A DNA stretch of 63,327 bases, the filler included, from Dimorphilus gyrociliatus (lineage: Eukaryota; Animalia; Annelida), in the NCBI GenBank assembly GCA_904063045.1. It is 4 parts of 4 records of this genome, joined end to end, with 100 filler letters (N's around TTAATTAATTAA, not from the genome) between each part and the next. Parts side by side here need not be neighbours in the genome. Positions count along the whole stretch, not along the records: positions 1 to 14,652 come from CAJFCJ010000093.1; 3 more parts are not named here. One strand, 5' to 3'. Both the position numbers and the translations under genes were made by a program. Positions within the stretch are counted from its first letter, which is position 1. Each line of letters opens with the position of its first letter. This document shows, in pieces, positions 1 to 14,652 of the stretch. Under the pieces are notes generated by a model. The model searched no databases and was not told the origin of the DNA. It saw only the letters and a program-made list of their open reading frames with translations.

Positions 1-1953
1 TGATGAATATCAAGAACTGTTAGACTCTGTTGTATGAAACAAAATTTAATCAAGCATAGGATATTTTATGGATTGCCAAAGATTCACAAAGAAAGAGATG
101 AATGGCTTATAAATGGAAAAATACCTAAAGGTAGACCTGTTGTAAGCAACTTGAGAACTGAATCCTATGAAATATCAAGATTTCTATCACACTACTTGAA
201 ACCAATTAGTACATTACATGCTTCCTATATTGACAACTCTCAAAATTTTTTAAATCAACTAAGTAGAATTAACATTCCCTCTGATGCTCTTCTTATAACA
301 CTTGATGTTAAAAATATGTACACAAATATTGATACATATACTGGTCTGAAAGCTGTCAAATACTTTTTCAAAAGTACCCTTCAAACAATAGACCTGATGA
401 CTTTCTAATAGAACTTCTCCAGTATAATTTGCACAAGAATCATTTTAAATTTTTAAACAAAATATTTCTTCAAAAATTTGGATGTGCTATGGGTCAGAGT
501 TATGCTCCAGCATATGCTAATTTATGGATGGCTTGGATTGAAGAAGTTTTTCTTTTTAATATAAAACCAAAGCCATTTTTCTATAAAAGATATTTAGATG
601 ATATCTTTCTGATTTGGACTGAAGGAGTTGAAAAATTTGTTAATTATCTTAGAAAAGCCAACAGTATTTTAAAGAATCTGAAATTCAAGGAAAAAATTAG
701 CTCAACTTCATCAACTTTCTTGATTTGGTTCTCTTTAAAGGAACAAGATTTCTGTCTTCCAATCATTTGGATCATATAACATACTTCAAAAAATGTGAAA
801 CATTTCACCAGTTACATCGAAATTCTCTTCATCCAAAGCACACTTTTAAAGGATTGTTGAAAGCTCAATTTCAAAGACTTTTTAAAAATAGTTCCTCCAA
901 TGTTATTTTTATCTAACCTGTCAAACTGTTATCCATCCACTCTTACAGCAAGGCTATCACCTAAAAGAAATAAGAAAAGCAATAAAATCTGTACTGCCAG
1001 AGAGAATTAAAAGAAATATGTGAAAAAAACAATGACATACCTGTGAAGATGAAAATCTTTTTCAACATCTCAAGCAAAATATATCATCCTCTTAAATTAC
1101 AATTCCTTTATAGAAATGGTTATATTAATTTTTTGGCTGAAAAACCCAGATTTACCTCCTTCAATGTAAAGAGTGTGGACAGTTAATGTTTTTTTCCATT
1201 TTCCAAAAGTACACAGATGTGAATATTTTTGAAACACTTGATTATTTACTGTCAAGACAGTACTTGAAAATTAAAAATGATGAACTAGTGGAGAATTTTA
1301 TTGAACATGGTCATTTTAATGAAAATCAACAAAATATTACAATATTTCCATATGAACAAATACAAAAAGAAATGTCTCCAATTGAAGTCTGTAAACATGT
1401 TTATATATTAAATACAAAATATATCATGTTTCATCCTTTTGGTTTGGCAAAATTCACTTCTTGCCAAAATTCAACAAAATTACCATTCATTATACCTTTT
1501 GGAAACCAACTACAGCCATTGATTAAAAAAATTCATAAATGTTATTGTAAATTTAGAATAGAAAATCCCACTTTGAAAAACCTTCATTTGATATTTGCTT
1601 ATACCAACAACACAAATATATATGTAAAACTAATAAATACTAATACAAGCTATCAACAGCAACAAATTGAATCCACTTCTTTTGCTTGCTCCAAGAACAA
1701 TAGCTCACATGATACAAGTACTGAAACATCTTTATTAGAAAAAGCCAAATTGCCAACAATCAAGAACTTCTACAAGAGGACAACTTGTCAAAAAGAACCT
1801 TCTTGCATTCCAGATAAGAAGCCAAAATTGGATGAAACAATCACCAGAAAGTTTAAATCCAATGAGCACAATGAAGGGAGTTGTGGAAAAACAAGTGATC
1901 CACCTGTAATTAAAAGAACTGGAAGAAGAATTAAGAAGATAGCAAAAAATTAA
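1..1953 (+). pseudogene. PLE reverse transcriptase ORF1, frameshifted (RT core, thumb, probable degenerate GIY-YIG, linker, basic tail)
   Basis: FYGLPKIHK...GRPVVS, LITLDVKNMYTNI, GCAMGQSYAPAYANLWM, YKRYLDDIFLIW, HRNSLHPKHTFKGLLKAQFQR and LLQQGYHLKEIRKAI are spread over ORFs 34-408, 429-779, 725-916 and 1186-1953. Frame changes occur mostly at or next to homopolymer runs. Confidence 0.9.
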
Positions 1954-2169
1954 ACAAAAACTTAATATTAGTTTCTTGTAGAACATAGAATTTGTTAAAG
2001 TTACCTTATGGTAAATTGTAGAAATAGTTAAAACATTTTGTAAAAGTTGTAGGCAGTATGTGTAGAACTTCCACAAAGTATACATTTATCCCAATATATA
2101 TATAGAACACATTTTTGAAAAAATACATTTCATTAACCAGTTTGCTTCATTTAAAATAGGTTTATACCA

Positions 2170-3237
2170 ATGGCTTCAAGTAATCCAATTAATACAAATA
2201 CTAAAGTGATCATTGAAAACTCAAAAAATGTGATTGCAAATAACATCAATGTTGATCATTTTCTTCCTTCTTCATTTCAAGACTTTTTCAACTTTCAATT
2301 GTATTACAATTGCATAAAAAAGTATATGAGAAATAAAGCCATCCAACCTCCACTATACAATGAGAAGGAACATGAAAAAGCTCTTCTTACCAAAATGTCA
2401 CAATTCAAAGAATTTTGTAACAAGGAATTATGGCTAGTTGAACATAATGAACAGAAAAGATTTATTAACACAGAACATCTTGTTAACTTAATCTATGAGC
2501 ATCTGAACAAAACAGACAACACTGTCAAACTTGAAAATTCTTTCAAATTAAACAGGAAAACAATTGACATCAGAGAAAATATTATACAGCAACTCCACAG
2601 AATTGGAATAAATTTGAGTGAAGATGAAGCTATAAATTCTTTTAAAATACAACAACCAGCAATCAACTTTCCAGATGTCTTGGATTTGCTAATCTTAAGT
2701 GATCATAGTTTGGGAGATGTTGATTTGAATAATGTTAGACTTGTTCAGAACAACATCAGATTTCAAGGAAATATAATCATTTTGAATATTAAAGAATTGT
2801 CATTTGCCAACTGTAAAGAAATACTTTTAAACTGGAAGTTAAAAGCAAAGGTAGTTTGTTTAAATGTTCCATTTCAAGAAGAACATGACACTGATAAACA
2901 CTTCTACCTGATATCAGAAAATAACTCAATAACAAAACATATCATGTTGGTTCAAAAATATCAGCTTCAGAAATCTCCAATCAACAACACATTCCAACAT
3001 ATCCTTCAGAAAATGTTTACAAATATTATCAATGTTAACCAAATGATAAAAGGAGACCCATTCCATGCAAGAATACCTCCAACTAAATTATCACCTTTAA
3101 GGAATGCTGTTCAACAACTAATTATGAATGAAATTATCGTACAGGCTCAAACCATTCTCAACCAACAAAACATCCAAAGAACTGGAAGGAAAAGAAAAAG
3201 ACTACAAGCCAATCAAAACAACAATCTTCAATCATAG
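2170..3237 (+). CDS. 355-aa ORF2 of the PLE; C-terminal half resembles an SGNH/GDSL esterase fold
   Basis: Intact ORF. Block pattern LLILSDHS / NIIILNI / AKVVCLNVP / NIINVN / GDPFH (DxxH) / final helix follows SGNH block spacing. Basic C-terminus RTGRKRKR. Confidence 0.6.
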   Translation: MASSNPINTNTKVIIENSKNVIANNINVDHFLPSSFQDFFNFQLYYNCIKKYMRNKAIQPPLYNEKEHEKALLTKMSQFKEFCNKELWLVEHNEQKRFINTEHLVNLIYEHLNKTDNTVKLENSFKLNRKTIDIRENIIQQLHRIGINLSEDEAINSFKIQQPAINFPDVLDLLILSDHSLGDVDLNNVRLVQNNIRFQGNIIILNIKELSFANCKEILLNWKLKAKVVCLNVPFQEEHDTDKHFYLISENNSITKHIMLVQKYQLQKSPINNTFQHILQKMFTNIINVNQMIKGDPFHARIPPTKLSPLRNAVQQLIMNEIIVQAQTILNQQNIQRTGRKRKRLQANQNNNLQS

Positions 3238-3471
3238 GACTCTAATAATTTTAAAAAATCATAGAACAATCAAAGTAAGTAAAAACTCTCATAGTCTAAC
3301 AATGCTAACAATACCAATACTCAGTTACCACTTAGAATTAAAATAAAAAATAATATTGAGCAAAACCTGTAAAAGTAAAAATAAATACAAAAAAAAATAA
3401 AATTGCTGGGAGTTGATACAATTCTAGAATTGATCTCTCCTCCCCTTGATTAGTATTCAAAACAATCAGAA

Positions 3472-3521
3472 TGACCCTGATGAGTCTTTGCTAAAGGGGA
3501 AGATGAAACCATGGTAGGTCA
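3472..3521 (+). ncRNA. Minimal type I hammerhead ribozyme (PLE pseudo-LTR type)
   Basis: Stem I TGACC (3472-76)/GGTCA (3517-21); core CTGATGA (3477-83); stem II GTCTT/AAGAT; GAAA (3505-08); palindromic stem III ACCATGGT (3508-15); GUA cleavage triplet, cut after 3516. Confidence 0.88.
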
Positions 3522-3701
3522 GTTACTCAAAAAATATTTTTCAAAAAATTTTTTACATCATGAACCAGGATATTGTTTTCTCTGTCAAACCTGTGCAGGA
3601 GGTCCACACTCTTGCATTCCATTTGGAACTCCTGAAAATTGGTGGAAGCTACCAACTTTTACCAGGACTTAGATCATAGTGTCAAGTTCAACTTTTATTA
3701 A

Positions 3702-3795
3702 AACCCTAACCCTAACCTAACCCTAACCAGTTCCCAAAAACATTACCAGAGTTGTGTGAGTGGCCTAACCCATAACCCTTACCAAACCCTAACCC
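3702..3795 (+). repeat. Telomere-like (CCCTAA)n stretches
   Basis: aaccctaaccctaacctaaccctaacc at 3702-3728 and degenerate cctaacccataacccttaccaaaccctaaccc at 3764-3795. Confidence 0.75.
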
Positions 3796-4530
3796 GGGAT
3801 GGAGAAAAGATTAGACTCTGTTGTGAACCTTTGCTGAAAAGACACCAAATGAAACAATAATAATGGTTTGTTATCTTATCTCAATTTTTGTATCTCAAAT
3901 GAGCATTGACACTTATGCATTTTCACAATGCAATCATTATCTAAAGCTATATTATCGGAAAGTTCCTCAACAAAAATTTGATTAAGTTCAGTGAGGAAAA
4001 GCAACAACGCTGGCCAATAAGAGTTGAGTAAAATTCTTGGAGCAAAATTATGACAAAATACTTAAAGTTACAGTTAGAAAATCGTAAAAAATCATACAAA
4101 GACTTACAGATTTTTGCTGTATTAATTGATTTTCACTTAAACAGACTTTTCTAAAATATAAATACTGTTAAAGTAAGAGTTTCTTGACTGAGAGACTGAT
4201 ATTGAAAATATCGTTATTCTTATCTTTCATCATCGTAATCAACATTTAACAAGTTGAATCTGAACAATCATAATTACGAATCCTATTTGAATATTTCTAT
4301 TTTGGCAATGGTGTTCATAAGACCAATATGACCTTGAACAAGTGTACTTTTCCACGATGTATTATATTTAATCTCATTTATATAGCCCTTGTTAAAACTA
4401 GAAACTACAATGGAATTATTGAATATACTGTAACTATAACCGTGTCACATGACCCTATCACAAATGTACCAATTTATTAATAATATTTGTGCGAATCAAC
4501 ATAATTGTGAATATATTAAGATTGGAAATT

Positions 4531-5672
4531 TTATATGCATACATTAACAAGTTTATCCTTAGAAGTGATTTCAATCTCGCAAATATTACAATAATTTGAT
4601 AAACAATTAACAATTATTTTGTTGAACTGTTGACCGAAACATTCAAATTTGCACAAGTTATCTTCCCCACTCTTAAGGTTACACAATACGGATTTATTGT
4701 TTGGATTATTTGTTACTGCAATATTCCAGCATTTATCGTTGTCCAATTTCGAGATTGCCACCTCGAAAGAATCATTAACAGCTTGTAAGATTGTATAGAT
4801 AATTTGACCGTTTAGCGGAATCTTTATCACTTCCGGTGGACACTCTAAAATTCCATCTCCAAGTGACGTAATCTGATTTCGAGAGCAAATATTCTTAGTT
4901 GAAACATGAATCATAGCTGTTCGTTTGTTTGTTTGTTTATAGATTATTCAATTATTATCGCCATACTCACTTAAACATTGAGGTTTTAGAAGATTATTTG
5001 CTGGTGGTTGGTAAAATAACGCACTGACAGCTGCAACTGATGAAAGGAGGCCGCAATCAGCCCCATTTTGGTTGATTGATTGGCAATTGGTAGTTTTGAA
5101 GCATTCTTCCCTGCACTTTTCTACCGTTACACCTTGCAAATCAGAGAGAACGCAAGGATCGCAACTATTGACAATTTTATTTGCTGTATCAATCCAATTT
5201 TCGCAGTCTTTAAACAATCAAAAAGCTTGTTTATGGTTAGACAACAACAACAAGAACAATGATAGATGGTTAATACTTATACCTGGATTAGTTATTTTAG
5301 TATAGAATAGGCTGTTATCTTGAGTTAATAGACCACCTTGGTAGGAACCATATGTCTTTGTTGTACAATCTTTACTTGCCTTATTATAGTGAAAACTTGT
5401 GCAATGATCAGAGTTTCTACACAGTTCCATACATTGTGCTAAATCCGAATTTGTATTTACTGCTGCACCATACAAATTTTCCAAAGCAGTATTCGCACGT
5501 CCAACGAATTCATTACAAACTGCAATAAACAAACAAAAATATTTATATAATTATTTACAGTATATATACTGTATATAGAATTTTTACGTGATTTTTCAAC
5601 ATATATCCGATTCAAAGTCACCAGACTAGGCAATGCCAAGAAAAGATAGAAAGTCTGAAATAGTCTTATCAT
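4531..5672 (-). CDS. Secreted protein, 4 exons: signal peptide, two PAN/Apple domains, C-terminal Cys-rich domain
   Basis: Hydrophobic N-terminus MIRLFQTFYLFLALPSLV. PAN patterns QCMELCRNSDHCTSFHYNKASKDC and KCREECFKTTNCQSINQNGADC. Phase-compatible GT-AG introns at about 5569-5520, 5282-5208 and 4970-4917 (first donor uncertain). Confidence 0.8.
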
Positions 5673-5989
5673 TTCTGTTTTATTTGAAACAACTGCACTG
5701 TATAGATTATTATTATTAGTATTATTATTAGTATTAATGTTATATTATACATTCTATTATATTGCCTTATGTAATATGCAAACTATCTACTGACCAGTTG
5801 AATGAAATGCACTGAATATCAGAATTCCATTGTTATTTCATAAATATAGGTTGAATGAAAAAAATTCAAAACAAAAAAACCCTTTTCTTTAACTGACTGC
5901 TTGCAGTACTCAAATGTTTGTCATTTAGTTAATGATTTATGTAATAGAAATGAATGGAAGCTTTTATCTTACGTGTCCTTAAAGTATGT

Positions 5990-6810
5990 CATTATATACG
6001 CTGATATCTCTACATCGATAATAAATCTTTTTACAGAACTCAATTCTCTCTTACAGTTAAAAAGTTATGGCACCATAAACTTTTCACTATTAAATATCAT
6101 CTATGCAGTTCATACAAAACATTCGTCATACAAAAAATAACTCTGTTATTATAAGATGTAGAACTTTCAAACTTGGTATAAAAATTATAATTGGTACACT
6201 GATCACAAATCTTTTTACAGAATTCAATTATCTCTTATAGTTCAAGAGCTATGGCGTTGTAAAGTTTGGTTAATATTTTGGCATAAAAACTTATACAATA
6301 AATATTCGTCATGTAAAAACTAACTTTGTTATTAATAAATGTAGGAATTTGAAAATCAATATATAGCTCAATTTTGTTATGCCGATGTCAAATCTTTTTA
6401 CAGAATTCAATTATCTTTTACCAGTCAAGAGTTATGGCACCGTAAAGTTTTGTCAGTATTTTGTCATTCAAGCCTATATAAGAAATATTCATCATGTAAA
6501 AACTAAGTTTGTTATTTGTAAACGTAGGAATTTGAAAATCGAGATATAGCTCAATATCGTTACACCGATGTCAAATCTTTTTACAGAATTCAATTATCTT
6601 TTGTGGTTCATGAGTTATGGAGCTGTAAAGTTTGGTCTATATTTTGGCTTCTAAGCCAATACAAAACATTCGTCATACAAAAATTAACTTTGTTATTAAT
6701 TAAGATAGAGTTTGGAAATTTTGTATATAGACTAATTTACACCTGACAATCCTAAATCTTTTTACAGAATTTAATTATCTTTTATCATTTTTGAGATATT
6801 TGGCATTAAA
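5990..6810 (+). repeat. Tandem satellite, about 183-bp unit, 5 copies
   Basis: The core aaatctttttacagaa(c/t)tcaattatct recurs at about 6025, 6207, 6390, 6573 and 6755. Confidence 0.85.
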
Positions 6811-7424
6811 GTTTTGTATAATTTTAAAGCCATAGAAAAACATTTTTTTTAGATTTTAATCTGTTACATCTTTTGAAGAGATATTTGTTTTTTATCACAA
6901 TTCATATATGTTTTTTTTTCAATTTAAAAAAAACAAAATGTACATTTATTTTTTAATTTTTTAGCACAACATGTAAGTTCACTTTTTTATTGGCACATTG
7001 ATATTTTCAAGTCACACAGGTATATTTGTTTCAAGTAAAACATTGTATAAACAAAAAAATTTTACAACACATATCACAGGACATTTTCTTTGAAGATATT
7101 TTTTGAGCATTGTGGTAGAGAGGGATAATCCTTGTAGATAGCCAAGTCCAAAGGGGTACAGATATCTTTTCAGTCCATCCAGCAGTCTTGCCTTTCAAAT
7201 TCTAATATAGCTTCCATTTATGAAAAATAAAATTAAGTTAAATATTTTCTTTCATATTAACTTTTAACAATAATACTTGACCTTTTTTTCAGAGATTTTT
7301 TTTGCCAAAAGATACTTAGCATAACCAGTTTATTTATCAACCACAACTCCTCATTTTGAAAAAAAATATAATCTATTTAAAATATTACACAACCTACAAT
7401 CCTAACAGTTCTTAATTTTAATTT

Positions 7425-8260
7425 TTTGCAACATAGAATAGTCTCCTCATACAAGATTAAAATCCCTGTTGCTGTATTTTAAGTTAAATACCTAGAGAAA
7501 TAGTGCAATTAGAGTAATCATCTCAAAAAAAGATTAAGACCCCACTTGCAAGAACACTTTAAAATAATTCCTAAACTTACAAATATTTAAAATTATTTAA
7601 AAAACCTAGTTACTTTAACTCCTAAGTTAAAATTAAATTATAAAACCAAAATTTAAATTTAATCTAATACCAAAACCTAAAAACCAGAAAAATTTGCAAT
7701 CAGAGTAGTTACCTCAGAATAAGATTACTACCCAGTTTGCACCCTACAACCTTACAATACAATTTTTGCTATAATACCTAAACCATAAACTTAAAATTAA
7801 TTTGTTTTAATTAAAAAACCCTTTGATCAACATGGAATAGTTTTCCCATACAGGATCAAAATTCATGTTGTCATACCTAAACCTTAAATATATTTTTTAA
7901 CAATTAAACCTTTTTAAAATTTATAAATCAGCCTAAATACAAAAGCCTAATATACCAGAAAAACATTGCAAAAAGAGTAGTCACCCCAAAAAAGGATTAA
8001 AACCCAGTTTGCTAACAACCTTATATAGCCTAATTTAAAAGAAATTGAAGAAATTTTTCATTAAAACTCAAAAATGTCAGAAAACCTTACACAGCCTAAC
8101 CTAACCTAAAACCAAAAGAAATTGCATTGAGAGTAATCACCTCAAAAAAAGATTAGGACTCAACAAGGCAGGAAATCCTACGAACCCTATCCTAAGGAAC
8201 TCTTAAAAAATTAGCATTAGGAGTGGTTACCTCAAAAAAAGATTACAACTCAAAATGCTA
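7425..8260. repeat. Irregular array of about 7 copies of a ~45-bp imperfect hairpin motif
   Basis: The motif gca..agagtarty-acctcaaaaaaagatta..acyc occurs at about 7511, 7702, 7974, 8130 and 8220, with more divergent copies at about 7430 and 7830. Confidence 0.7.
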
Positions 8261-9171
8261 GAAATCCTACTTAAATCATTTGTTAAAATTGTATAATCTG
8301 ATAAAATATCATGGAAAGGTTTTGTTTTTTTAAGGAAGTTCTGTTGAGTTTTTTGTGAAAAATCAGGATCATTGAAAGTATTGATTGTTCTTTGAATAAT
8401 TAACATATTTTGAAATTTATATTTCCTTTCATTCTTTCTTTGCAACTCATTAAAAAAAAAATCCTGTCTACTTACAGCATCATCATTCTGGACATCCTCA
8501 TCCAACTGCATCATTTCTCCAACTTCCAAATTCTCTCCAAGACCCATCTGATTGTAGATTTCCATATGCATTTCCTCAATATTTTCACAATTTGTAGATG
8601 GTAACTCAGATTCTAATCCAGTTGTTGGTGGTGCAGGTTCAATTCCAGTTGATTGTGGTGCAGATTCCAATCCAGTTGTTGGTTGTGCAGATTCAATTTC
8701 TGTTGTAAGTGGTTCCAATTCTGACTGCAGTGCTGATATAGCCATTTCTTGTTCTTGAAAATATTCTTCTCCTGATTCAAATAGTTGTGGTGTAACAGTT
8801 TCAATTCCAGATTGTTGTCTATGTTGAATAATCGTTGTTTCTTCTGAGAATCTTCTTGCAGTACTAGCAGTTGGCTGTGCAGGTACAATGATGTCTGTGT
8901 TTTCTGCTGGAGTTGTTGTTTCATTTTCCAATTCATTTTCAGTTGCAGATGATTGAGGGATAGGGTTGGTTGTTGTTGCTGTTGTTTCTTTAGTTGGAGT
9001 TGGAGCATGGCAGTCATTATAGAACTTAAGTAACTTTTTTTTCCAGTTGCTGAATACTTTATCACTTCTTTCTCCAATGATTTCCAAATTTTTTTTATTT
9101 ATATTTAACACTTTCTTTTCATAAAAGTCTAAAATATTTTTAAAAGCATCTTCCTCTTTAACTGTTTTCAT
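8227..9171 (-). CDS. Orphan 314-aa ORF, E/T/P-rich centre with three 10-aa repeats
   Basis: Long ORF in AT-rich DNA. ESAQPTTGL/ESAPQSTGI/EPAPPTTGL repeats (30-bp units at about 8610-8700). No recognised domain. Confidence 0.5.
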   Translation of the reverse strand: MKTVKEEDAFKNILDFYEKKVLNINKKNLEIIGERSDKVFSNWKKKLLKFYNDCHAPTPTKETTATTTNPIPQSSATENELENETTTPAENTDIIVPAQPTASTARRFSEETTIIQHRQQSGIETVTPQLFESGEEYFQEQEMAISALQSELEPLTTEIESAQPTTGLESAPQSTGIEPAPPTTGLESELPSTNCENIEEMHMEIYNQMGLGENLEVGEMMQLDEDVQNDDAVSRQDFFFNELQRKNERKYKFQNMLIIQRTINTFNDPDFSQKTQQNFLKKTKPFHDILSDYTILTNDLSRISSILSCNLFLR

Positions 9172-9214
9172 TAAATCTTTTAAGAATCTATAATTTTTTA
9201 AGTCTAGCTGTTTT

Positions 9215-9523
9215 TTATAAAATTTTCTTATATTTTTTTGATACAGATGTTAATTTTTGAATATATTTAAAAATAACTTTTAGCTCTTCTACATTGTCTG
9301 AAGGGTCAGCTAATGCCTCTTTAATACAACATGCTCCTAATAATTGATAGTTAAAGAATTGTTTACAGATAGCAGAATCAAAAGTTACATGAAATCTGCT
9401 ATAGTAGGCATTGTAGTAACAATGAAATAGAAAACTAATTTGAACTTTTAAATTTTTTTCAGTAATATCAATTGATTGAGTAGGATCTTCAAAAATTGGA
9501 ATACACCATCTATTAGTTTCCAT
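9215..9523 (-). CDS. Orphan 102-aa ORF, possibly the same gene as 8227-9171 (spliced or frameshifted)
   Basis: Co-oriented ORF ending 43 bp upstream of the 314-aa ORF, with protein-like composition. Confidence 0.35.
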   Translation of the reverse strand: METNRWCIPIFEDPTQSIDITEKNLKVQISFLFHCYYNAYYSRFHVTFDSAICKQFFNYQLLGACCIKEALADPSDNVEELKVIFKYIQKLTSVSKKYKKIL

Positions 9524-10129
9524 TGTAATGCTGTGTAAAAAAAAATTATTAGAAAAATTTCAAAGTGTATTTGTACAACTTACAAAAAATTTTTCAAAGC
9601 CTTCTCTTTTCCACAAAAAAGTAAACCAAGTTTCCAAAGTCAAACCTGAGACTGATTTAATGAATATTAAAAACACCCAGTTATATTTATATACATCTTC
9701 TTGGTTAAGAGTTTTTTTCTGTAAACAATTTAATTAACCAAACAATTGAAAAGGTTTTTAGTGATCTTTCCCTTGATCACCTTTTTACATAATATGCAAG
9801 CACTCACTAAACAACTATTAACCATTGAATACTTTCACTCTTGTCTTGTCAAACAAAGTTAATTTAAACTTACAAAGTTCAACTCTCCTTCAAAGCTTGA
9901 CTTTAGTTAATTCTATAAATTAATTATTTAAATATGCAGGGATGTGTTCTTTTCTTAATCTTTTTTTCTTACCAATCAAAAAAATTATAGCATAAAATAA
10001 ATTTCTTTAAGCCTTTAAATGTATAGAAAAAAATTTTCTTCAAAAAATAAATAATGTTTTCAACATTTAACTTACAATTTATTTATTTCACGTAAGAAAA
10101 ATACAACCAATTGATAGTATTATTTTTTG

Positions 10130-13100
10130 CCATTAATTTTGCTTCAAATTTGATCAAAATCGGTCCAGTGGTTGCTGAGATATGGATTCTCTTTAATGTT
10201 CCATTTTGACACTGTTATTGGCTTACATCAATCAAAAATATTCGTCATAAAAAAACTAAATTGGTTAATATTAGTGATACAGATCTGAAATTTTGTACAT
10301 ATACTGATATTGATATGCCGATTCCAAATCCTTTTACAGAATTCAATTATCTCTTATGGTTTGGGAGCTACATGGACTTGAAGTTTAATGCATTTTCTTT
10401 ATATAATTCATTGTCATAATTCATATTTTTGAATTGACAAATATTAATTTAATATATGGAATGTCTTTATAAATGTTCATATTATTTTCTAACAATAATT
10501 TTGGTTATAATCTTTTATAAAAGCCTATATAAAATATTTGTCTATGTTGTGCATACTCTGTTATTAATTAAGGTACAAAGTGCAACTGCCTTACATAAAA
10601 CATTTGTTATAAAATGATAATAAAGATTAATTGGTAGTTTTTTAATTTTTGTACATATAGCATTTAAGATATGCCAATTAAAAATATTTTTACAAAATTC
10701 AACTATGTTTTACAGTTATTAACAACTAATTGAAAGTAGATAATGATATCAGAGTGGCCAATTTTTTTATCTTATTTAAAAATTAAGAAAAGAAAAATAA
10801 TACTAAACCTTTATTAATATTTACAAAAAGACACATAGTTCTTTTTCAAAATTTTCATTGATGTACTCTTTCCTCCACAATTTAATGATATAGAACTTTG
10901 TATTAACTAATTTTGGGATGCCAATTTTAAATCTTACCATTACACAGATTTCAATTATGTTGTTTAGTTTTTAAGTTACTCTGCTTCAAAGTTTAATACA
11001 TTTCCTTTATATAAATCCCTAAAAGAATTGATATTTTTCAAGTGGGATTTATTTGAATGAGGTTTTGCTCACATTTTCATTGCTTACAATTTGTTTTAAT
11101 AATTTTTTTCCTTCAAATTTAATCTGACTCTTAAGAAAAACATAATAAGCAAAAGAATCAGCAAGCAGAGAATGCAGATCAAGATGTTGATCAAGAAGAT
11201 GAAGAAGAAGCTATGTATCTTGAAGAAGAAATAGATGTTATTGCCAGTTAAAGAAGTATTATACACTTTTGATGTTATAAATATTTTTATTGTTATGATA
11301 TAGTTGTGTTCAAAAGAATTCAACAAATTGTACTTAATTGGCAGATTGAGATCAGAGTGATTGTTTTTATTTGCAAGAAGTATCATAAGCAACTGGGATT
11401 TATAACTGTTGATTTATTTAAAAAAAATTAGAAAGAAATAGCAAAAAATGTATTAAAATGTATTTGTTTTTCCTTTGTATGTTTTTAATTTTAGTTTAAA
11501 GACATTTCTTTTTTTCTAATTTTTATATAGCTTCTTCTTAAATAAAACATTTTTTAAACAAAAAATATTAAAACTTTCTTTCAATTAACTTTTACAATTT
11601 TGATTCATTTTAATTGATATAGTCTCATTCTGTCATTAATTTTACTTCAAATTTCATCAAAAATCGGCCAGGTAGTTGCTGAGATATGGATTCTTATAAA
11701 TGTTCTATTTTAACACTGTTATTGGCTTACATCAATCAAAAATATTCGTCATAAAAAAATCAAATTTGTTAATATTTAAGTTAGAGCTTTCAAATTTGAT
11801 GCATATACTAATATCACTACGCCGATCTCAAATCTTTTTACAGAATTCAGTTATCTCTTACAGTTCCAGAGTTATGGCACCATCAAATTATGCTTGTTAT
11901 TTCTTACATATTGGTCTATAGGAAATATTCATAATGGCTGGACTAATTCTGTTGTTAATTAAGTTACATGTTTGTAATTCTGTATTTAGAATAGTATGAT
12001 AATGCCAATCATAAAAACACAATTCTTTTAAATATATATAATATAAAATAAAAAAAATTGATGTATATAGCTTACATTTAAATATTCAGTTATAGTCCTT
12101 TTTCTTACCATCAAGAAGTTGAAGAATAAAATATTCCTAAACCTATAAATGTACAGAAAATATATATTGTTTTATTTTGATTGAAGAGCATTTAGATTAG
12201 TATTCCAATTTGAATTTTTTTTACAAAATTTAACAATCTATTATGTTTTTCAGCAAGGGTCAGTTAATGTCATCTACATTTTCCTTATAAAGTTAGAGTT
12301 ATATACAGTATATTCTATTTGAATTCAATTATCTTTTGTAGTTTTTGAGCTACAGTGCTTCAAACTTTAATATATTTCCCTTTTATAATTCACTAAAAAA
12401 GTTGATATTTTTCAAGTGGGATTTATTTAAATAAGGTTATGATCACGTTTTATTTCTTATTATTTCTTCTAAAAAGTTTTTTCCTTAAAGTTTAATCTTG
12501 CATTACAACTCAGTGAAAATTTTTCATTATAGAGCTGTAAAGTTTTTTTTACATAAAACAAAAGTTAGCTAATACAATATTAATGTATTGAATAGGTTTT
12601 ATATGTTACTTTCCTCTTTCTCAAATATATATATATAATTGATTTCATTAAACATTGGAGAGATATATAAAGAATACTTTTATCAATTTAACCACAGCAA
12701 ACCAAATGCTACAATTCAAGATTCCTTTTAAAAGTATATAAAAATATTCAAAAGAATGATTTCCATCAGAACCAATAGAAAAAGTTTTGGAAGAAGAGGT
12801 CTATAAGAAAAGGATTAAGACAATAAGAAAAATAAACATGGTAAACAAGAAAACAAGAAAAAGGAACAGGAGAAACAGAAGGAAAACAAGAAGAGAAACA
12901 AACTCACCAAAAGGATGAGCAAGCAGAAGAGGCAGAGATGAAGAAAGTGTTATTTATTTTGAAGAAATAGATATTAAAAAAAATGATAAAAATATATATT
13001 AACCAAGAAATTTGATTCAAACATTTGATAAAAAATTGTTAAACTGAGAAGAATTGATCACTCTTACAAATAACTTTGTTTTTGGCTAAAATTCATAAAA

Positions 13101-13580
13101 AAATATTAATTATAGTAAAGAATGAAAAGTAATTATTATAAATTTAATACCAACAGCAAGACAGAATTGTAAAGTTATATTATATTATATATTTATTTAA
13201 ATTTCAATTTTGCCTTAAACTTTAATATATTTTCTTTATACAATTCATCACATTTCTATTAATATTTTTGGAATAAGAAATATTTATGTATTATGCAGAA
13301 CATCCCTCTAATTGTTATTATTTTTTCCTGACAATAATTTTGGTTCAAATTTGATCAAAATCGGCCCAGTAGTTGCTGAGATATGGATTATAAGAAACAT
13401 TATATATCAACTCTATTAAAAGCTTATATAAACAAAAATATTCGACGTTCAAAAAAACTAAATTTGTTAATATAAAAGTCAGAGCTCTGAAATTTGTACA
13501 TATACTAATATTGATATACCGATTATAAATCTTTTTACAGAATTCAATTATCTTTATAGTTTGGGAGCTACATTACGTTA
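10130..13580 (+). repeat. Degenerate higher-order tandem duplication (about 1.5-1.7 kb period) containing satellite monomers
   Basis: ttcaaattt(g/c)atcaaaa(a)tcgg...gttgctgagatatggatt at about 10143, 11645 and 13345, each followed by a 183-bp-family monomer (about 10325, 11829, 13528). aagtgggatttattt at about 11041 and 12414. Confidence 0.7.
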
Positions 13581-14652
13581 AAGTTTGTATTGAAGACTTT
13601 TTTTTAAAAAAAAAAAAAAAAAATTTTTCATCTTGAGTGATGTCTTAAAAAAAAAAGAACGGCGGTGGTGTCTGTTAATTAGTTTCAATATTACGAACTC
13701 AATATTATTTGGTCAGTCTGCCTACACCCCTACACATCAAAATGTAAGTAAAATTGTTAAATTACCCTGATTAATATCTGTTTTTGTAATTAATTTTTGT
13801 TGTATTTTATCTATTAAAATATGTAGAATGTTATCTGTTGCTTTTTAATTATTTTATTCAATTATGTACTTTGTTGTATTGTAATTGTAGGAATTTCTGG
13901 TTCGTCACAACTGTAATCGTCCTTTCCAATCATTTACCAACTTGCCAAAGTACTGGTCCAAATAGAACCTTTAAAGTTCGTCCACAAATAGTCTAACAAA
14001 GGCAATTTCGGTAGAAATTGATTAACAAAACACCAGTATTTCGTCCAAAGAATATGTATTGAGTAAAATGAGCTTCTAGTTCTAAACAAGCTAGTTTAAA
14101 CAACTAGCTGACGGTTAGAAAACTGAACTATCAACTGTTAATTTCGTAGGGTTTATATACTCTTTTAAGGGTTGATAGTTCACAAATTTCAATGTTCACA
14201 AAAACAAAAGTAACATTTGAAGACAAAGAAAAGTTCTAAATATGGTCATGTTTTTATTGTTTTCCTCTTCTAAATAATAGTTGAATTTCGAAGGTTGGAG
14301 AGTTGCATAAGATGTAACAATTTTAGTAGGACAAGTCCAACAATCAAGAAAACATGTAGATTGTATATTTGACCGTTTTTATATTCTACCTTAATAATGA
14401 TATTCAATTGATTGAGTTAGTAAATTTAGCATCAGCATATAGAGGAAGTATATCTGATTAATGCATGTTAAAAGAACAGTATTGTGTATACAAATGTTGA
14501 ATAGTGAATATAATCTAAACTTAGAATTTAAGCATAATTGATAATTAATTGAACTAGTTTTAGTTCGAAACATAAATTTATGGATTAATAAATTGTAATA
14601 TTAATGCTAGGTTGCAAATAGCAAATATTCTTTATATAATTCAATAGGTTTT

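Follow-up and report, generated by a model that had tools for sequence, protein, structure and literature searches.

Athena and Terminon elements of bdelloid rotifers are endonuclease (EN)-deficient Penelope-like elements (PLEs) that lack an EN, reach up to 40 kb and contain many open reading frames (ORFs). In the model put forward for them, a hammerhead ribozyme in the RNA adjoins reverse-complement telomeric repeats, the RNA pairs with the G overhang and the reverse transcriptase (RT) primes on the chromosomal 3′-OH, and their copies are 5′-truncated, capped by telomeric repeats and arranged head to tail (PMC6431247 and PMC8557442). According to these papers, animal descriptions of telomere-attaching PLEs with accessory enzymes come essentially from bdelloid rotifers, hosts with unusual telomere repeats. 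EN− families can also arise inside EN+ PLE clades, as with Neptune-like MjPLE01 of the kuruma shrimp and Chlamys PLE-X, and are inferred to switch to another 3′-OH source (PMC8557442). SGNH/GDSL esterase domains, in turn, occur in CR1/L2/RTEX non-long terminal repeat (LTR) retrotransposons and in rotifer Vesta LTR elements (PMC5408684). Here we describe a PLE of the annelid Dimorphilus gyrociliatus, labelled clade A, of which the 3′ 3.7 kb out of ~7–7.5 kb occupies positions 1–3703 of the window, that is, of the whole 63,327-nt stretch of DNA analysed (four genome parts separated by filler, the first, at positions 1–14,652, coming from CAJFCJ010000093.1). Clade A is neither a canonical EN+ PLE nor a giant Terminon, and we favour, with some reserve, a reading in which it resembles Athena and uses the ends of chromosomes as primers.

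The published D. gyrociliatus assembly has ~350 scaffolds with an N50 of 2.24 Mb, and both Penelope elements and telomeres are absent from the text of the genome paper (PMC7854359). The assembly analysed here comprises 77.9 Mb in 349 contigs with ~27% G+C, to which clade A adds an unannotated class of transposable element, its sole named close protein match being DgyrCDS14925 of D. gyrociliatus. Our comparisons of junctions and structure cover a part of the genome's element copies, those in the loci that were fetched.

A two-ORF Penelope-like element at a contig end

Position 1 of the window is the end of the 63-kb contig C93 (plus strand), which cuts the element within ORF1, so that only the 3′ part of this frame is present (1–1953, stop at 1951–1953; all element features given below are on the plus strand). 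It is followed by ORF2 (2170–3237) and by a 3′ tail unit (3382–3703) that ends in ...cttttattaaaa and elsewhere occurs also solitary and in tandem. An earlier note on this DNA had recognized a PLE RT here, and the translation of 1–1953, read in three frame segments, bears this out, with PLE RT motifs GRPVVS, LITLDVKNMYTNI, FGCAMGQSYAPAYANLWM and YKRYLDDIFLIW (RT core at about 100–640, then thumb/linker) preceding an EN-like segment and a basic C-terminus. Moreover, an intact paralogue (L031:1736–3904) matches PLE proteins at E values of 1e-83 to 1e-146, and the best database matches are all PLE-type proteins with DUF8422, HTH_animal and RVT_1, GIY-YIG being present or not. By these motifs and matches, clade A belongs to the PLEs through a PLE-type RT. 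In three diverged subfamilies (C3, C76 and C51) and in the copy on contig C50, ORF1 runs uninterrupted for 1536–1707 codons and is followed by ORF2 where the latter is intact.

Copies on C50 and C195 are ~98–99% identical to that in the window. Relative to the intact C50 copy, the window copy has a single substitution in 3.3 kb and otherwise differs nearly only in length, by five differences of 1 nt and one of 25 nt (near 29, 363, 710, 905, 992 and 1144), most of which fall in homopolymers; its frame interruptions may be assembly errors or very recent lesions. Homopolymeric length differences resemble long-read errors and the element runs off the contig end, as would suit an assembly artefact generated by chimeric repeat joins at that end. 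Such an artefact is nonetheless very improbable, given that the same architecture recurs on many contigs and that contigs of an independent run, X1, cover window positions 666–3693 piecewise, X1 being evidently RNA-derived because it also splices the neighbouring PAN gene. A candidate 5′ end of the element, C195:11267, was rejected, as it proved to be a 5′ truncation under a telomeric-repeat cap, with intact ORF1 extending ~2 kb further. A C50 copy devoid of the tail was likewise dismissed, since its seeming stop at window position 3381 marks the start of N letters.

Telomeric tracts separate co-oriented, 5′-truncated elements

Directly after the tail, positions 3704–3726 read CCCTAACCCTAACCTAACCCTAACC, a C-strand telomeric tract of CCCTAA and CCTAA units with two matches against 0.03 expected by chance. 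The C-rich telomere-like repeats described in the earlier note are thus real at this tract, but the second stretch at 3763–3795 is no free repeat: it is the end of a 73-nt remnant (3723–3795) of the tail of a second PLE family, clade B, 5′-truncated at an internal CTAACC and ending in ...aaccctaaccc. This remnant starts at a CTAACC that overlaps the telomeric tract, is 100% identical to the clade B tail end and recurs, also with 100% identity, at 15 or more other loci. At 3796 it joins single-copy DNA, which directly abuts the element stack and extends to approximately 5990, with no telomeric array on the proximal side.

True terminal arrays were found at the start of C162 (623 bp), the start of C27 (~490 bp) and the end of C251 (190 bp), and these, like the tracts between elements, are an irregular mix of TTAGGG (65–77%) and TTAGG (20–35%), the inter-element tracts being short (12–117 bp). 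In the fetched loci, whatever could be mapped immediately upstream of a C-strand tract proved to be the precise 3′ terminus of a clade A or clade B tail, and whatever could be mapped downstream proved to be an element 5′-truncated at differing internal positions; all mapped element matches are co-oriented. In the window and other copies, ...ttattaaaa passes directly into CCCTAA/CCTAA, so that clade A, like Athena/Terminon, has short reverse-complement telomeric repeats at its 3′ end. In the C195 copy of the window element, the cut falls ~2.2 kb into ORF1 and the cap consists of 41 nt of repeats. Inward from the 623-bp terminal array of C162 come, in every case on the C strand, a 5′-truncated clade B tail, a full-length clade B element, one more tail unit and the end of a further element, the last two each finishing in a short C-strand tract, and C251 likewise ends with an element stack. 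Hence 5′-truncated, telomere-capped copies in head-to-tail arrays at telomeres, characteristic of Athena/Terminon, are present on C162 and C251, with a terminal array also on C27. RT matches are confined to small contigs and to the initial 35 kb of contig C3 (3.2 Mb). In the fetched loci we thus recovered the co-oriented, multi-ORF, hammerhead-bearing copies ending in C-strand telomeric repeats that had been proposed, and mapping them against TTAGGG arrays, as had been suggested, yielded junctions that are co-oriented, 5′-truncated and capped by telomeric tracts. Upstream, where a chromosome end was to be sought, the contig stops at position 1 of the window; related copies lie at contig ends and at true telomeres (C162, C251).

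A different origin of this arrangement would be the accumulation and duplication of ordinary PLE copies in subtelomeres, with the CCCTAA tracts as target or recombination leftovers and no special mechanism directed at chromosome ends. The near identity of the C93, C50 and C195 copies fits segmental duplication or gene conversion between chromosome ends, and the identity of the 73-nt remnant across loci and an imperfect orientation relative to contig ends would also fit. However, mapped element–repeat junctions in the fetched loci are all co-oriented with the C strand and have exact element 3′ ends as their upstream flanks, 5′ truncation points vary among copies, and the changes of catalytic residues described below are conserved across the clade, all of which make this origin improbable. 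On contig C23 (G000:C23:755867–758684), a TTAGGG array is followed ~1.2 kb on by a CCCTAA array, that is, two telomeres head to head inside a contig, which reflects a join made between two chromosome ends in scaffolding or else a fusion; contig ends are therefore an imperfect proxy for chromosome ends.

A conserved GIY-YIG derivative that lacks catalytic residues

In alignments with EN+ relatives, the EN-like domain of clade A (about 1141–1460; YLLQCKECGQ..ENFIEHGHF..PFGLA, then a C-terminal module) retains both Cys and both His of the PLE CCHH finger as well as the overall spacing. Replacements affect the glycine of YIG, the catalytic Arg, the Glu in RE..WI and the last Asn (GLN to GLA or GLV), in six of six D. 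gyrociliatus clade A proteins and in an outside relative with 43% identity, P0121, from Logan run ERR14224706. Pfam GIY-YIG yielded no match in clade A even at E 0.1 and matched above threshold in clade B and the relative P0002. Judged by its residues, the domain is conserved and very probably unable to cut DNA. Its two ORFs, and the replacement of Arg, Glu and Asn in its nuclease domain, exclude clade A from the canonical EN+ PLEs (Penelope/Poseidon, Neptune, Nematis), which are defined by a single ORF with a catalytically competent C-terminal GIY-YIG. It also departs from the absence of EN in Athena/Terminon, since a conserved, CCHH-bearing GIY-YIG derivative is present.

A tree of 51 RT cores, built from the available relatives and without reference sequences of Athena, Coprina or TERT, placed clade A (seven rows) as a well-supported group on a long branch and left its position relative to the CxxC-linker EN+ group and the Poseidon-like group open. 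Clade A resembles the CxxC-linker EN+ PLEs (Neptune-like), which include its closest full-length sequence matches (P0002, P0003, P0005, P0008, P0037), in 31–36% identity over 73–85% of RT–EN, in the order RT, EN and A[FY]RxNxNL module, and in a hammerhead in the terminal region. Those relatives (linker CX2-5CxxC) have one ORF of ~700–760 aa with an intact GIY-YIG, whereas clade A has neither the CxxC linker nor the catalytic residues but possesses a 700–900-aa N-terminal extension and ORF2. An unusual order, in which the conserved A[FY]RxNxNL module comes after the EN domain and not before it, is common to clade A, clade B and the CxxC group and argues for EN+ ancestry. In its longer form, ..IPY/TTYS...A[FY]RxNxNLxDxLV, the module stands after GIY-YIG in clades A and B and the CxxC relatives (P0002-type) and before it in fish Poseidon-like and P0122/P0124-type proteins, so that the domain order is permuted. 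Like MjPLE01 and Chlamys PLE-X, as cited in PMC8557442, clade A has a GIY-YIG lost or decayed within a lineage whose relatives have one; it differs from them in that the remnant is kept and conserved, its junctions point to chromosome ends as the alternative 3′-OH source, and it carries esterase-like domains. In a language-model search, the nearest sequences to clade A were rotifer PLE-type clusters listed without GIY-YIG, a hint at Athena affinity that we treat only as a lead.

Clade B and the possibility of EN-dependent insertion

Clade B is likewise a multi-ORF PLE, with an upstream ORF of ~290 codons, an RT–EN ORF of 791 aa and an ORF of 435 aa with weak coiled-coil matches (L062, C162:1–10000; L063/L064, C41:129000–144217). 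Its 791-aa product passes Pfam RVT_1 and GIY-YIG and retains all catalytic residues, and on C162 the element is stacked directly under the 623-bp terminal telomere array. The TRAS and SART elements of the silkworm insert into telomeric repeats in a sequence-specific, EN-dependent manner. By analogy, the clade B GIY-YIG could nick TTAGGG arrays, with clade A mobilized in trans or through the same nicks. The co-resident, EN+ clade B of like tail design leaves room for this route, and EN-mediated insertion, acting in cis for clade B and in trans for clade A, would yield the same junctions and orientation. Consistent with it, the two clades share contigs as well as a tail composed of a hammerhead, 180–290 nt and CCCTAA, and the constant junction phase, aaaa/CCCTAA, suits sequence-specific nicking as well as it suits pairing of RNA with an overhang. 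We regard EN-dependent insertion as the main alternative but as less likely than end priming, for several clade A subfamilies with open ORFs have arisen despite a remnant devoid of Arg, Glu and Asn, and long-term reliance on the protein of another family is, to our knowledge, undocumented for PLEs. Moreover, the inter-element tracts are short, and the clade B remnant in the window meets single-copy DNA with no array proximally.

ORF2 and ORF1 carry related esterase-like domains

The independent 355-aa ORF reported earlier stands: positions 2170–3237 form an open frame with the basic end RTGRKRKR, conserved across the other subfamilies at 41–44% amino-acid identity with a ratio of nonsynonymous to synonymous substitution rates (dN/dS) of 0.26–0.29 between subfamilies; ORF2 is a real gene of the element, under purifying selection. 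Searching the genome with ORF2 yielded weak matches within the N-terminal half of ORF1, and profile alignment with hhalign delimited a common domain of ~150 aa (probability 96%, E 3e-9; ORF2 residues 112–265, nt 2503–2964), so that ORF2 is a paralogue of the SGNH-like domain of ORF1.

A structural model of this ORF1 domain, computed with AlphaFold2 (AF2) from a 15-sequence alignment, had a predicted local distance difference test score (pLDDT) of 87.1 and a predicted template modelling score (pTM) of 0.85, and its top Foldseek matches were E. coli thioesterase I (TesA), EstA and GDSL-like lipases. On structural re-alignment nearly all of the top 50 were SGNH/GDSL hydrolases, with Z from 12.4 to 10 and 144–170 of 181 residues aligned (Z of 12.4 for 5b5l, 12.3 for 1yzf and 12.1 for the PAF-AH 1vyh). 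The modelled ORF1 domain thus has the SGNH alpha/beta fold, to which ORF2 is linked solely through the hhalign paralogy. We sought the block I GDS Ser, the block III Asn and the block V DxxH, placing them by motif position and not by residue-level superposition. The expected places are taken in ORF1 by SDSS (GDSS in P0126, GNSS in P0001), ANLN and KHLT, the last without the Asp, and in ORF2 by D-x-S-L-G-D, within LSDHSLGD (about 2694–2717), and GDPFH (3052–3066).

Sequence searches gave little further: Pfam had no match for ORF2, clade A ORF1 or the SGNH-like segments, a PDB sequence search with ORF2 and N-terminal profiles had none, a protein atlas search with ORF2 gave no usable match, a homologue search with the N-terminal 870 residues of ORF1 found none, and a profile of the SGNH-like domain retrieved only seven matches, none Pfam-named, among 1.84 billion proteins. 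The parallel drawn earlier with GDSL-esterase accessory ORFs of Terminons holds at the level of fold but does not extend to their giant size. Like the CR1/L2/RTEX and Vesta elements, clade A is a retroelement carrying an esterase-fold accessory domain, although it belongs to a different retroelement class and the similarity lies below Pfam detection. In all subfamilies ORF1 and ORF2 end in a like basic motif, RTGRR(I)KK and RTGRKRKR (1915–1938, as RTGRRIKK, and 3181–3204 in the window), which may be a shared signal for nuclear localization or RNA binding.

A predicted hammerhead in the tail unit

Within the tail unit, positions 3472–3521 conform to a minimal type I hammerhead, UGACC-CUGAUGA-helix II-GAAA-CCAUGG-UA/GGUCA, comprising helix I (3472–3476 and 3517–3521, UGACC/GGUCA), CUGAUGA (3477–3483), helix II (3484–3504, GUCUU..AAGAU), GAAA (3505–3508) and a palindromic helix III, ACCAUGGU (3508–3515), with predicted cleavage after GUA, at A3516. 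At least 28 copies from 14 loci have the motif at the corresponding position, and clade B has the same core with all three helices swapped for other complementary sequences. As a predicted motif, the hammerhead first noticed in the window is therefore confirmed and, with its core, three helices and compensatory change between the clades, gives clade A the terminal-region hammerhead known from PLEs. Rfam searches with the entire piece and with just the hammerhead had no hammerhead match for the window copy, and for a canonical copy the matches stayed below threshold (Hammerhead_3, 17.3 bits, E 0.18); the window copy has U in place of C at position 11.1 (3504), where most copies, including expressed ones, have C. 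In neither clade is the hammerhead immediately upstream of the telomeric repeats, the distance in clade B being ~290 nt. The predicted clade A motif is of a minimal, dimer type, and would probably process tandem or read-through transcripts of tail units.

Tandem units were observed, 596-bp tail units on C53 and C195 and, at L031 6176–9652 (C195), five 839-bp units each with a clade A-type hammerhead, a retrozyme-like array; such arrays were recently linked to PLEs (bioRxiv 10.64898/2026.07.22.740005). As to transcripts, a 2.1-kb X1 contig over window positions 785–3061 (minus strand) shows two gaps, of 80 and 101 nt, with ends CT..AC on the plus strand, equivalent to GT..AG introns on the minus strand. 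It is thus an antisense, spliced and apparently non-coding transcript, and it heads towards the contig (chromosome?) end, the direction of telomeric repeat-containing RNA (TERRA).

Proposed priming on chromosome ends

The published end-priming model fits clade A best because its nuclease remnant is degenerate. Without a working nuclease, clade A would use chromosome ends as primers: its RNA, terminated 3′ by (CCCUAA)n, would pair through these repeats with the TTAGGG overhang, whose 3′-OH the RT would extend; erosion would then trim the 5′ side, telomerase would re-cap the end with irregular TTAGGG/TTAGG repeats and the next element would be added, building co-oriented stacks. For the window, the simplest reading, from right to left, is that a clade B element would have been attached to a single-copy DNA end and eroded to 73 nt, that telomerase would have re-capped it with the 23-nt tract and that a clade A element, now running off the contig end, would then have been attached.

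Several observations weigh against end priming by an Athena-like element. Among copies on contigs of known length, only some two thirds are oriented as expected relative to the closer contig end, the exceptions including inverted pairs (C68), and contig C93 stops inside the element, before any telomere beyond position 1. The loss of EN activity is read from residues alone, and the co-resident clade B, whose GIY-YIG is apparently intact, is stacked at telomeres in the same way. ORF2 is assigned to SGNH only indirectly, a model of the whole ORF2 (five sequences) being unusable at pLDDT 36, and its block I is D-x-S instead of D-S. Finally, positions 10.1/11.1 of the window hammerhead form a G-U pair, and its cleavage site (3516/3517) lies ~186 nt upstream of the 3704 tract and not adjacent to it as in Terminons.

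Set beside Athena by published features other than RT phylogeny, clade A is like Athena/Terminon in its co-oriented head-to-tail arrays at chromosome ends with 5′ truncation by short telomeric tracts, in a 3′ end with reverse-complement telomeric repeats near a hammerhead-bearing region, in having more than one ORF, a GDSL/SGNH-type accessory domain and a long N-terminal extension of the RT, and in the lack of a nuclease bearing catalytic residues. Unlike these elements, it inhabits an annelid with TTAGGG/TTAGG telomeres, has two ORFs in ~7–7.5 kb as opposed to many in up to 40 kb, keeps a CCHH-bearing GIY-YIG remnant fused to the RT, has its cleavage site away from the repeats and contains the SGNH domain twice, inside ORF1 and as ORF2. 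The description of the element as Terminon-like thus applies to its end-stacking, telomeric tail and accessory SGNH fold, and fails for its compact two-ORF size, nuclease remnant and hammerhead spacing.

More tentatively, and as a possibility we put at somewhat short of even, clade A may represent an annelid lineage of its own of telomere-priming PLEs, with a retained dead GIY-YIG finger and duplicated SGNH domains, that builds part of the chromosome ends together with telomerase. If this is true, the Terminon/Athena design arose twice, or is far older and wider in animals than the rotifer-only record. The second case would be a culturable annelid with a compact genome of 74–78 Mb and ordinary TTAGGG-type telomeres, and would allow study of the switch from nuclease-dependent insertion to chromosome-end priming with an intermediate, the retained but dead-looking nuclease domain, still visible, of what recurrent esterase domains do for retroelements, and of the cooperation between telomerase and the addition of retroelements where both act on one chromosome end.

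Sequences flanking the element stack

About 700 bp from the element stack, the minus strand carries PAN/Apple-domain coding exons at 4531–5532 (PF00024, E 3e-9), with an intron at ~4873–4970 confirmed by a spliced contig. Further away, at 8227–9171 on the minus strand, lies a 314-aa ORF without Pfam match that includes four 27-nt tandem repeats (8607–8713). Between the two, at 6195–6700, are 2.8 copies of a 183-bp satellite, of which dozens of copies with 70–80% identity occur on many other contigs; these largely share small contigs with PLEs, and the repeat may be a subtelomeric satellite.

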